Below are positions 9,263 through 20,159 of a DNA stretch of 64,000 nucleotides, one piece after another. The notes under the pieces are model-generated. The model was not told the DNA's origin, made no database searches, and saw only the letters and a program-made list of their open reading frames with translations. The position numbers were made by a program, and so were the translations under genes. The stretch lies in sequence record NC_023557.1; one strand, written 5' to 3'. Each line of letters starts with the position of its first letter. The first letter of the stretch is position 1.

Positions 9263-10396
9263 ATGCAGTACAGTACCTTTAATACCACTAAAAACGATCA
9301 GATGGCTGAACCGATGTTCCTGGGTCAGTCGGTTAACGTCTCACGTTATGATCAGCAGAAGTACCCCGCGTTCGAAAAGCTGATTGAGAAACAACTTTCA
9401 TTCTTCTGGCGACCTGAAGAGGTGGATGTTTCGCAAGACCGTATCGACTTCCAGGGGTTGCCAGATCATGAAAAACACATCTTCGTTTCTAACCTGAAAT
9501 ACCAAACCCTGCTGGACTCGATTCAGGGTCGTAGCCCGAACGTGGCCTTGCTGCCGATCTGTTCTATCCCGGAACTCGAAACCTGGATTGAAACCTGGGC
9601 GTTCTCTGAAACGATTCACTCGCGCTCATACACCCACATCATCCGTAATATCTTTACTGACCCCTCCATCGTGTTTGATGACATCGTGACCAACGAACAC
9701 ATCAAAGCGCGTGCTGAGTCCGTCACGGAGTATTACGACCAGCTGATCGAAATGACCATGTACCTCAACTTACTGGGTGAAGGTACTCATGTAATCAATG
9801 GTAAGAAAGTCGTGGTCTCGATGCGTGCTATCAAGCGTCTGGTCTACCTGTGCATCGTGTCGGTCAACGTGTTGGAAGCCATCCGCTTCTATGTCTCGTT
9901 TGCCTGCTCGTTTGCCTTTGCTGAACGCGAGCTGATGGAAGGCAACGCCAAGATCATTAAACTGATCGCCCGTGATGAAGCCCTGCATCTGACCGGCACC
10001 CAGCACATGATCATGTTAATGAAGTCCGGTGCTGACGATGCTGAGATGGCGGAAATCGTTAAAGAGTGTGAAGCAGAAACATACGCACTCTTTAAGGACG
10101 CTGCAGAGCAGGAGAAAGACTGGGCGAACTATCTATTCCAGGACGGGTCGATGATCGGTCTGAACAAAGAGATCGTGTGCCAGTACATCGAATACATCAC
10201 CAACATCCGTATTCGCGCCATCGGTTACGATGACATCTACGCCGGTGTCAAAGCTAACCCAATCCCATGGATCAACTCCTGGTTGGTTTCTGACAACGTG
10301 CAAGTCGCTCCACAGGAAGTGGAAGTAAGTTCTTATCTGGTCGGTCAGATAGACTCGAAAGTGGACGCCAACGATTTCGACGATTTCCAACTGTAA
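9263..10396 (+). CDS. nrdB: ribonucleotide reductase class Ia beta subunit
   Basis: [53 protein letters not shown]; enterobacterial type, uninterrupted. Confidence 0.97.
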
Positions 10397-18767: not shown

Positions 18768-18936
18768 TAATTAAATACTAGACAGTGTAATCATATACGT
18801 AAAGGGGTCTGGTGAAAGCCATATCCCTTTTGGTTATGCTGTCTTTTTTTTTGGTTAAGAAATACTAGCCTTCTCCATTATATGCAATTTACACGATACA
18901 CTTTTCTATTTATTACATCAGCAAGAGAGATAAGAC

Positions 18937-19080
18937 ATGAGCGCACCTGAAGAATTTGATATGGACGGCCTGGAATCACTGGATCTGGAAGGCGCTGAGA
19001 AAGCGGCAGAAGAGAAAGCAGCCGGTGGTGGCGAAGCCCTGTCTGACGGCGAAGCAGATTGCGAAGGCTGCAAGATCTAA
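18937..19080 (+). CDS. 47-aa acidic peptide ending in an NrdA-like redox tail (DCEGCKI); not in ORF track
   Basis: MSAPEEFDMDGLESLDLEGAEKAAEEKAAGGGEALSDGEADCEGCKI*; purine-rich RBS region; codon usage like neighbouring phage genes. Confidence 0.75.
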   Translation: MSAPEEFDMDGLESLDLEGAEKAAEEKAAGGGEALSDGEADCEGCKI

Positions 19081-19510: not shown

Positions 19511-20122
19511 ATGTTTAAACGTTTCATGTTCTATCTGTTCAGTAAGTTATTTGACCATAAAGGGGAGTACACCATGTCCGAAGCAGTGAAAGATCAGCAA
19601 AGCAATGATGTTAATGCAACCAACGATGTTGAGGTGCAGCCAACACCTGCTGAGACCTCTGCACCGGAACTGGCATCTAACGATGTGGTTGCCGCACCTG
19701 AAGCCGCAGGCGATGCCCGTCCTGAAGTCCAGGATACGGCAGAGTCGACGCCAGTGGTGATTGAACCGGTTGCAGTTGCTGAACCATCCGCACCTGTCGT
19801 GGCACCTGCTCCTGTTGCTGTACCTGCGGCTGAGCCAGCTCCCGCACCTGTAGCACCGACCACCCCGACCGACAGCGATAAGACTGAAGGCGAACCCGAT
19901 ACCAATCGCTTCGACCATCTGGCCAGCACCTTGAAGAGTTTACTTCAGGTAGCCGGTCATGAGCTCGACGAAGCATTTGACGATGCAGTACCTTTGGCAA
20001 AACAGATCGCTTCCAGTGACGAAGAGTTCGGTGACAAGCTGAAAGACATCCTTGTGGTTGTCGGTCGTGAATACGGCGAAGCTTTCCATCATTTCTTCAG
20101 CTATGCGAAGAAGCACATCTAA
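19511..20122 (+). CDS. Ala/Pro-rich protein with duplicated C-terminal helical motif (alternative start 19572)
   Basis: GAGGT RBS at 19511, GGGGAG RBS at 19572. Confidence 0.75.
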   Translation: MFKRFMFYLFSKLFDHKGEYTMSEAVKDQQSNDVNATNDVEVQPTPAETSAPELASNDVVAAPEAAGDARPEVQDTAESTPVVIEPVAVAEPSAPVVAPAPVAVPAAEPAPAPVAPTTPTDSDKTEGEPDTNRFDHLASTLKSLLQVAGHELDEAFDDAVPLAKQIASSDEEFGDKLKDILVVVGREYGEAFHHFFSYAKKHI

Positions 20123-20128
20123 GAAAAC

Positions 20129-20159
20129 AGGGGGTGGGATTTCCTGCCCCTTTTATGCC
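20129..20159 (+). terminator. hairpin + TTTATGCC tail
   Basis: GC-rich stem then TTTTATGCC. Confidence 0.65.

Follow-up and report, generated by a model that had tools for sequence, protein, structure and literature searches.

A small protein family of Erwinia phages and Enterobacterales with the C-terminal ending of class Ia ribonucleotide reductase

In ribonucleotide reductase (RNR), a cysteine pair at the C-terminus of the alpha subunit re-reduces the active site of the enzyme and obtains its own electrons from thioredoxins or glutaredoxins (PMC11903788, PMC4078304). Here we describe a small phage gene whose product ends like this tail. It lies on the plus strand at 18937-19080 of a 64,000-nucleotide stretch of sequence record NC_023557.1 (the window, in which all positions below are given), which covers record positions 62001-126000 of the 271,084-bp genome of Erwinia phage Ea35-70 (Agricanvirus), a phiKZ-like phage that encodes the nuclear shell protein and the PhuZ tubulin.

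So far, the cysteine tail of RNR has invariably been treated as a segment of the enzyme itself. Yeast Sml1 and its relatives are small disordered RNR regulators that compete with the alpha tail, and the C-x2-C tail of yeast Rnr1 reportedly acts in trans on the neighbouring monomer, which provides a precedent for an alpha tail that works on the active site of another chain. The T4 NrdC thioredoxin and the NrdH-type glutaredoxin-like proteins are phage redoxins that feed RNR; they have the thioredoxin fold and at least 80 residues. In class II RNR, a C-terminal cysteine-rich zinc-finger domain is reported to mediate turnover via thioredoxin/glutaredoxin (PMC5704485). Searches of the literature by motif string and by topic found no description of a free-standing RNR tail. 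What is new here is that a known functional element, the alpha tail, occurs as an independent, widely conserved gene.

The C-terminal tail and its counterpart in NrdA

The product of 18937-19080 is a peptide of 47 residues (15 acidic, 3 basic) that ends in C-x-x-C-K-I; the translation agrees with that given in an initial annotation of the window, which was made from the sequence alone. Its NrdA-like tail, delimited from alignments and from the ends of NrdA proteins, spans residues 36-47 (19042-19077) and comprises an acidic run, Cys42 (19060-19062), Cys45 (19069-19071), and the terminal Lys-Ile. The initial annotation read this end as the tail of the RNR alpha subunit, and comparison with phage enzymes bears this out, as the same last seven residues close 13 phage class Ia NrdA proteins. 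These proteins came from a scan of a viral contig collection with a degenerate DNA pattern consisting of the back-translated last seven codons and the stop codon, with Asp or Glu allowed at one position. The pattern matched 112 stretches, where chance is estimated to account for only a few; by reading frame, they fall into 13 proteins of 750-784 amino acids (aa) or fragments of such proteins, 27 small acidic proteins, 11 longer proteins with an acidic tail, 57 copies of one recurrent 134-codon frame, and 4 others. All 13 long proteins carry the conserved NrdA C-terminal stretch, 12 of them adjoin nrdB, and the ATP-cone, all-alpha, and barrel domains of class Ia NrdA are present in each of the four that were tested. 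Two of the 13 were traced, one to T4-like cyanophages and the other to T4-like phages of Cronobacter/Enterobacter. Because the match is exact, lies at the very C-terminus, and is nearly exclusive to NrdA and the peptide family, we consider the likeness to NrdA convincing.

Outside NrdA and the peptide family, the seven-residue ending occurs almost only in the recurrent frame, which does not belong to the family. This frame, sometimes of 69 rather than 134 codons, is rich in Ser, Arg, and His, is not acidic, and is unrelated to the peptide; it is found on 57 prophage-like contigs (L016, L019, L022, and 54 more viral loci) and also at L132, and it is probably an off-frame reading of a conserved element.

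The NrdA proteins of E. coli (read from the RefSeq nrdAB locus, which was reached through the phage nrdB), Erwinia pyrifoliae, E. tracheiphila, E. rhapontici, and Pantoea end in an acidic run followed by C-x4-C-K-I, and C-K-I is terminal in all 120 enterobacterial NrdA clusters among the matches listed. Peptide and host NrdA have in common the acidic run, a Cys-Glu at the start of the cysteine pair, a glycine within the pair, and the free Cys-Lys-Ile end. The peptide has what defines a class Ia NrdA tail, namely an acidic flexible C-terminus with a cysteine pair near the free end, while the catalytic domains of NrdA (ATP-cone, all-alpha, ten-stranded barrel) are absent from it and no Pfam family matches it at E<=10. 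Among the bacterial matches listed, only two NrdA proteins have a tail with two-residue cysteine spacing, both from metagenome-assembled genomes (MAGs), one of Polynucleobacter (L133) and one of Candidatus Scybalousia (L179). Over its last 55 residues, the L133 protein is identical to an NrdA on viral contig L088, and the L133 gene may be phage DNA binned into the MAG.

A constrained gene in a phage with nrdB and without nrdA

The 47-residue gene is real, conserved, and under purifying selection. The initial annotation described the open reading frame (ORF) as missed by the ORF track; GenBank already lists it as hypothetical protein Ea357_107, called from an internal ATG at 18961, eight codons downstream. 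All 47 codons are called in the relatives Bosolaphorus gp108 and RAY gp108, and we prefer the longer start at 18937 because the first eight residues are conserved in relatives and a purine-rich stretch lies 7 nt before this ATG. By tblastn, the protein is present at 97.9-100% identity in 16 Agricanvirus records (8 of the 16 being GenBank/RefSeq duplicates) and as a homologue with 74.5% identity in phage AH06; metagenomic relatives have 83-89% identity. The Ea35-70 gene differs from that of Bosolaphorus or RAY by three synonymous changes and no non-synonymous one, and dN/dS against more distant 47-codon genes is 0.18-0.25. A conserved cysteine pair in homologues, which the initial annotation had named as a check, is what we find: D41, C42, C45, K46, and I47 are invariant in both of our alignments (A1 and A2).

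Two further conserved segments precede the tail. The first is an N-terminal acidic and hydrophobic motif (residues 6-13, 18952-18975), in which Phe7 and Asp8 are nearly invariant in alignments A1 and A2. The second is a central predicted helix (residues 17-30, 18985-19026), in which the columns of Leu17, Ala20, Glu21, and Ala24 are invariant or nearly so. AlphaFold2, supplied with a 35-sequence alignment, predicts short helices at residues 9-13, 17-30, and 34-39 with modest confidence (pLDDT of about 73-76 at 17-30) and models the C-terminal part with low confidence (pLDDT 52-55); this prediction fits a mostly disordered small protein. The N-terminal motif loosely resembles the C-terminal tail of NrdB, and we speculate that it might imitate that tail.

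Upstream of the gene, RNA folding identified an intrinsic-terminator-like hairpin followed by nine T residues (18780-18853, plus strand), which ends the preceding unit (Ea357_106). Its folding energy is -31.9 kcal/mol (z-score -5.19), and none of 200 shuffled sequences folds equally well. It is followed by an AT-rich leader (18854-18936, plus strand), which from its sequence we presume to be the promoter region and which contains the purine-rich, Shine-Dalgarno-like stretch at 18923-18929. No sigma-70 consensus was found in the leader, and a 14-mer just upstream of the ORF, considered as a repeated promoter motif, is not enriched in the window (9 matches versus 4.4 expected). Since there is no terminator-like site downstream before 20128-20146, Ea357_107 probably heads a transcription unit that continues into the next two genes, Ea357_108 and Ea357_109. 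Thus, of the initial suggestion that the gene forms its own transcription unit, the upstream boundary holds in the form of a strong terminator-like hairpin, whereas a boundary directly downstream does not. The 203-aa product of Ea357_109 (19511-20122), which lies two genes downstream and probably in the same unit, is rich in Pro, Ala, and Glu; its homologues RAY gp110 and Deimos-Minion gp114 have been detected in lysates by mass spectrometry (PMC6690015).

The window also contains an intact class Ia beta-subunit gene of enterobacterial type, nrdB (Ea357_089; 9263-10396, plus strand), identified by a structure-library match, tblastn, and key residues. Its product is identical to E. coli NrdB at 292 of 376 residues (77%, full length), matches E. 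coli NrdB structures with an E value of 6.8e-204, keeps all nine radical-pathway and metal-ligand residues that were checked (W48, D84, E115, H118, Y122, E204, E238, H241, and Y356), and closely resembles E. coli NrdB at its C-terminal end. The homologous NrdB of Deimos-Minion has been detected by mass spectrometry (PMC6690015 Table 3). By annotation, the complete 271-kb Ea35-70 genome has no nrdA, and tblastn of this genome with E. coli NrdA and three phage NrdA proteins at E<=10 gave only noise, except for a tail-to-tail match at the ORF. The presence of an intact nrdB without nrdA, which the initial annotation had noted for the window, therefore extends to the whole genome. With an intact NrdB and no NrdA, the phage NrdB would work with host NrdA, implying hybrid enzymes. 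To judge from this lone nrdB, the phage invests in the class Ia RNR of its host, and it also carries other genes for deoxynucleotide (dNTP) synthesis, namely MazG, thymidylate synthase, thymidine kinase, and dihydrofolate reductase.

An nrdB without nrdA could also suggest that the ORF is what is left of a decayed nrdA, or that it completes a tail-less phage NrdA, as the initial annotation had considered. We assign practically no probability to this explanation. Ea35-70 lacks any NrdA body that a tail could complete. The ORF begins with a start codon and ribosome-binding stretch of its own downstream of a terminator, is under purifying selection, and is homologous over its full length to the stand-alone proteins of a widespread family. 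A decayed 3' remnant of nrdA in particular is ruled out, as no NrdA-like sequence lies upstream and the full 43-47 residues are conserved across that family.

Phage-borne and chromosomal members of the family

The peptide matches PHROG 10239, a family with no function known to PHROG, over positions 1-47 of 47 (E 9.3e-30). When the peptide, its homologues from bacteria, and the N-terminal parts of the fusions described below were scanned with Pfam and NCBIfam, the only family found was Phage_gp49_66, which is of unknown function. Profile searches returned 222 clusters in a word-indexed search and, in a full scan of 1.84 billion representative proteins, 31 representative clusters at E<=0.001, which are either small proteins or carry the module at the C-terminus of proteins of 85-223 aa of unknown function. 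No fusion to a known enzyme was found in this full-library search, the fusions including three proteins of 169-223 aa of unknown function. In several phage contigs, the acidic linker and seven-residue ending are also fused to Phage_gp49_66 (the N4 Gp49 / Sf6 gene 66 family), at L058:1913-2266 (-), L048:1729-2106 (+), and L121:8801-9235 (-). Judging from these sequences, the tail behaves as a portable module.

In a distant DNA search, the last 30-59 bases of the ORF were found at 84-93% identity in unrelated Erwinia jumbo phages. The jumbo-phage products that end in the tail are Y3_038 (51 aa), KWAN_259 (75 aa), pEa_SNUABM_11 gene 265 (63 aa), and pEa_SNUABM_5 gene 34 (208 aa); all four match PHROG 10239, and their genes sit among CMP deaminase, thymidylate synthase, or MazG genes, just as the Ea35-70 copy has MazG and thymidine kinase genes as neighbours. 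Stand-alone copies are also present in 50-kb phages, including Pantoea phages AAM37, PSKM, and SSEM1 together with an Erwinia phage group, Proteus phage Myduc, and a phage deposited as Xanthomonas phage DIBBI. Annotation and tblastn revealed neither nrdA nor nrdB in the complete genomes of AAM37 and the jumbo phage Kwan. Its presence in phages that have no nrdB, or no RNR gene of any kind, shows that the peptide is not linked to a phage NrdB.

The same degenerate pattern, scanned over one genome per bacterial species, matched at least 120 stretches, and at least 114 of the matches listed are acidic ORFs of 42-45 codons. The carriers are Erwinia, Pantoea, Tatumella, Mixta, Serratia, Rahnella, Ewingella, Rouxiella, Hafnia, Budvicia, Leminorella, Sodalis, and relatives. 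E. amylovora has its own 43-aa copy (P0124, on 323 contigs), which is 55% identical to the phage peptide. Bacterial and phage peptides align over their full length, with M1, A20, D41, C42, E43, C45, K46, and I47 invariant in the 35-sequence alignment A2 and F7, D8, L17, E21, A24, E39, and G44 conserved in at least 90% of its 35 members. In length, full-length profile match, and conserved columns, the phage peptide thus agrees with the 43-aa/PHROG 10239 family, and by this sequence comparison it is homologous to a small chromosomal protein of its Erwinia host. As the family occurs in the host and in phages without RNR genes, its partner must be encoded by the host.

In databases, the family is listed as hypothetical or of unknown function, except that a few UniRef entries are named TraD. 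The UniRef name "conjugal transfer protein TraD" looks like an annotation error. A 715-aa protein that is tape-measure-like by look (P0066) is in the same 90% cluster (that of P0055) as 43-aa Hafnia peptides, where its inclusion seems to be an artefact of clustering.

The bacterial gene (e.g. L164:4641-4769 (-)) directly follows yedI on the same strand in 61 of 111 loci among the matches listed, mostly 29-48 nt past the yedI stop codon, and from this vsr-yedI-yedP-dgcQ location the gene belongs to the chromosomal core and not to a prophage. In E. coli, yodC presumably occupies the place of the 43-aa gene after yedI, and no match was found by a DNA-level search for a homologue in 5,426 E. coli genomes. 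A -10-like element some 30 nt upstream of the ribosome-binding site is common to the Rahnella, Serratia, Hafnia, and Ewingella-type loci.

Two alternatives to a role at RNR have to be weighed. In the first, the peptide would be a virion-packaged protein cut by a phiKZ-type head protease at G-L-E, as the initial annotation had raised. In favour of this, a gene for a head maturation protease (Ea357_169) is present in the phage and [S/A/G]-x-E motifs occur in the peptide; but G-L-E is uninformative because it is one of six [S/A/G]-x-E matches in 47 Glu-rich residues, and these matches are compositional. Bacterial chromosomes carry homologues, as do 50-kb phages that are not related to phiKZ, and the peptide is not in the RAY/Deimos-Minion lysate proteome (PMC6690015). 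Accordingly, we find packaging very improbable.

The second alternative is that phage and bacterial peptides share a partner other than RNR, or that their ending converged on that of NrdA, the peptide being an acidic adaptor or a metal-binding mini-protein for another host target. Profile and structure searches link the peptide to no family, the bacterial gene context is unrelated to nucleotide metabolism, and nothing in NrdA corresponds to the N-terminal motif or the central helix, all of which would agree with such a role. We nevertheless hold it to be rather unlikely, as the match to NrdA comprises the Asp before the first Cys, the Cys, Glu/Asp, Gly, Cys, Lys, Ile, the free C-terminus, and the preceding acidic run, and as this ending is otherwise almost confined to NrdA in the viral and bacterial scans. 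Moreover, one metagenomic family member (P0008) has the four-residue cysteine spacing.

Possible roles of a free tail and comparison with known systems

Tentatively, and with slightly less than even confidence, we favour a model whereby the peptide mimics the RNR alpha tail in trans, serving as a shuttle from redoxins to host NrdA. In this model, the peptide would be made from the leader downstream of the strong terminator, and Cys42 and Cys45 would cycle between dithiol and disulfide, like the NrdA tail, with host thioredoxin or glutaredoxin as the reductant. The peptide would enter the active site of host NrdA, whose partner may be the NrdB of the host or that of the phage, and re-reduce the active-site disulfide, and the extra re-reduction capacity would increase the supply of dNTPs during infection. 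Redox cycling, contact with NrdA and with thioredoxin/glutaredoxin, and stimulation as the direction of the effect are parts of the model that we infer. A free tail made by phages without an alpha subunit can only meet host partners, and the model would explain why nrdB is carried without nrdA, because both phage products would act on the host alpha subunit. The nucleotide-metabolism neighbourhoods of the phage copies and the investment of phages in dNTP supply favour a positive role.

Several points weigh against this model. The likeness to NrdA consists of a short motif plus composition, and a phmmer search of all PDB chains, full-length E. coli NrdA included, with the peptide found no NrdA at E<=10 and one chance match. 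The two cysteines are separated by two residues in the peptide versus four in host NrdA. Host NrdA already has a tail of its own, making the need for extra tails doubtful. No linkage to nrdAB was found in the 120 bacterial loci among the matches listed. A 16-nt AT-rich palindrome about 105 nt before the peptide start, which resembles one read 93 nt before E. coli nrdA (locus L125), occurs only in three Ewingella-type loci (L154, L170, and L199), and this nrdA-type palindrome is absent at the related Rahnella, Serratia, and Hafnia loci. RAY gp108 is not among the RAY/Deimos-Minion lysate proteins identified by mass spectrometry (PMC6690015 Table 3), although its absence from a shotgun list is weak evidence because the peptide is small and very acidic. 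Finally, as the tail is fused to unrelated domains, a docking handle fits as well as a redox shuttle.

Some of these points would be met by a peptide of opposite effect, in which the free tail acts as a competitive mimic or brake that occupies the tail-docking site of NrdA or the entrance to its active site, or soaks up redoxins, and in which phages have taken over a host regulator. Its action would then parallel that of the small disordered RNR inhibitors of yeast. All evidence on the identity of the tail applies equally to this possibility; a chromosomal copy in bacteria whose NrdA is tailed makes more sense as a regulator than as a spare, a peptide with this different cysteine spacing could donate electrons poorly and yet compete well, and the fusions to unrelated domains suggest a docking handle. 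However, lytic phages need dNTPs, and the intact nrdB together with MazG, thymidylate synthase, thymidine kinase, and dihydrofolate reductase points to boosting rather than inhibition; also, the two-residue spacing works in genuine phage NrdA. Altogether, we regard a brake as unlikely, if still a serious competitor to the shuttle from redoxins to host NrdA that we favour.

Taking the bacterial and phage proteins together, it is possible, if doubtful, that they form an unrecognised class of small proteins in Enterobacterales and their phages that acts on class Ia RNR by presenting the alpha redox tail separately. Docking on RNR or a redoxin would fall to the conserved N-terminal motif and helix, and phages would have captured and fused the module repeatedly. 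The alpha tail is found as a separate gene in three settings, namely the fire-blight pathogen and its relatives, jumbo nucleus-forming phages, and 50-kb phages without RNR genes, and a family so far listed only as hypothetical can thereby be named and given a hypothesis to test. Should the peptide work at RNR, it would represent a new layer of control of bacterial DNA-precursor synthesis and, at about 140 bases, a very cheap means for a phage to act on dNTP synthesis.

Compared with the NrdA tail, the peptide has the same acidic flexible stretch, cysteine pair, Lys-Ile, and free carboxyl end; its last seven residues are those of T4-like phage NrdA, and its ending is one small deletion pattern away from that of E. 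coli/Erwinia NrdA. It differs from NrdA in that it lacks the catalytic body, is encoded by a separate gene, has an N-terminal motif and helix of its own, and has the two-residue spacing versus the four-residue spacing of the host enzyme. With the 43-aa protein of Erwiniaceae, Yersiniaceae, Hafniaceae, and Budviciaceae it shares homology over the full length, the length class, and the invariant tail, while the Agricanvirus form is phage-borne and has a short Gly-rich insertion before the tail. The class II RNR domains are similar in being C-terminal cysteine-bearing appendages and different in being part of the enzyme chain of another RNR class and folded as zinc-binding domains (PMC5704485).

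Like the phage redoxins, the peptide would be a phage-supplied dithiol component of the electron path to RNR; in contrast to them, it copies the acceptor, i.e. the tail, and not the donor. It does not have a thioredoxin fold, as it has no Pfam or NCBIfam match, is predicted to form three short helices and a disordered tail, and is too short at 47 aa. The Sml1-type regulators resemble it in that the peptide is small, acidic, and mostly unfolded, and would act at the tail-dependent step of re-reduction; they differ in being eukaryotic and in not being copies of the tail, and we found no sequence relation between them and the peptide. Our search of the literature found nothing comparable to Sml1-type regulators described for bacteria or phages. 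If a class of small RNR-acting proteins with a separate alpha tail does exist, it would be the bacterial and phage counterpart of the eukaryotic small RNR regulators and would allow phages to control the dNTP synthesis of their hosts without an RNR of their own.

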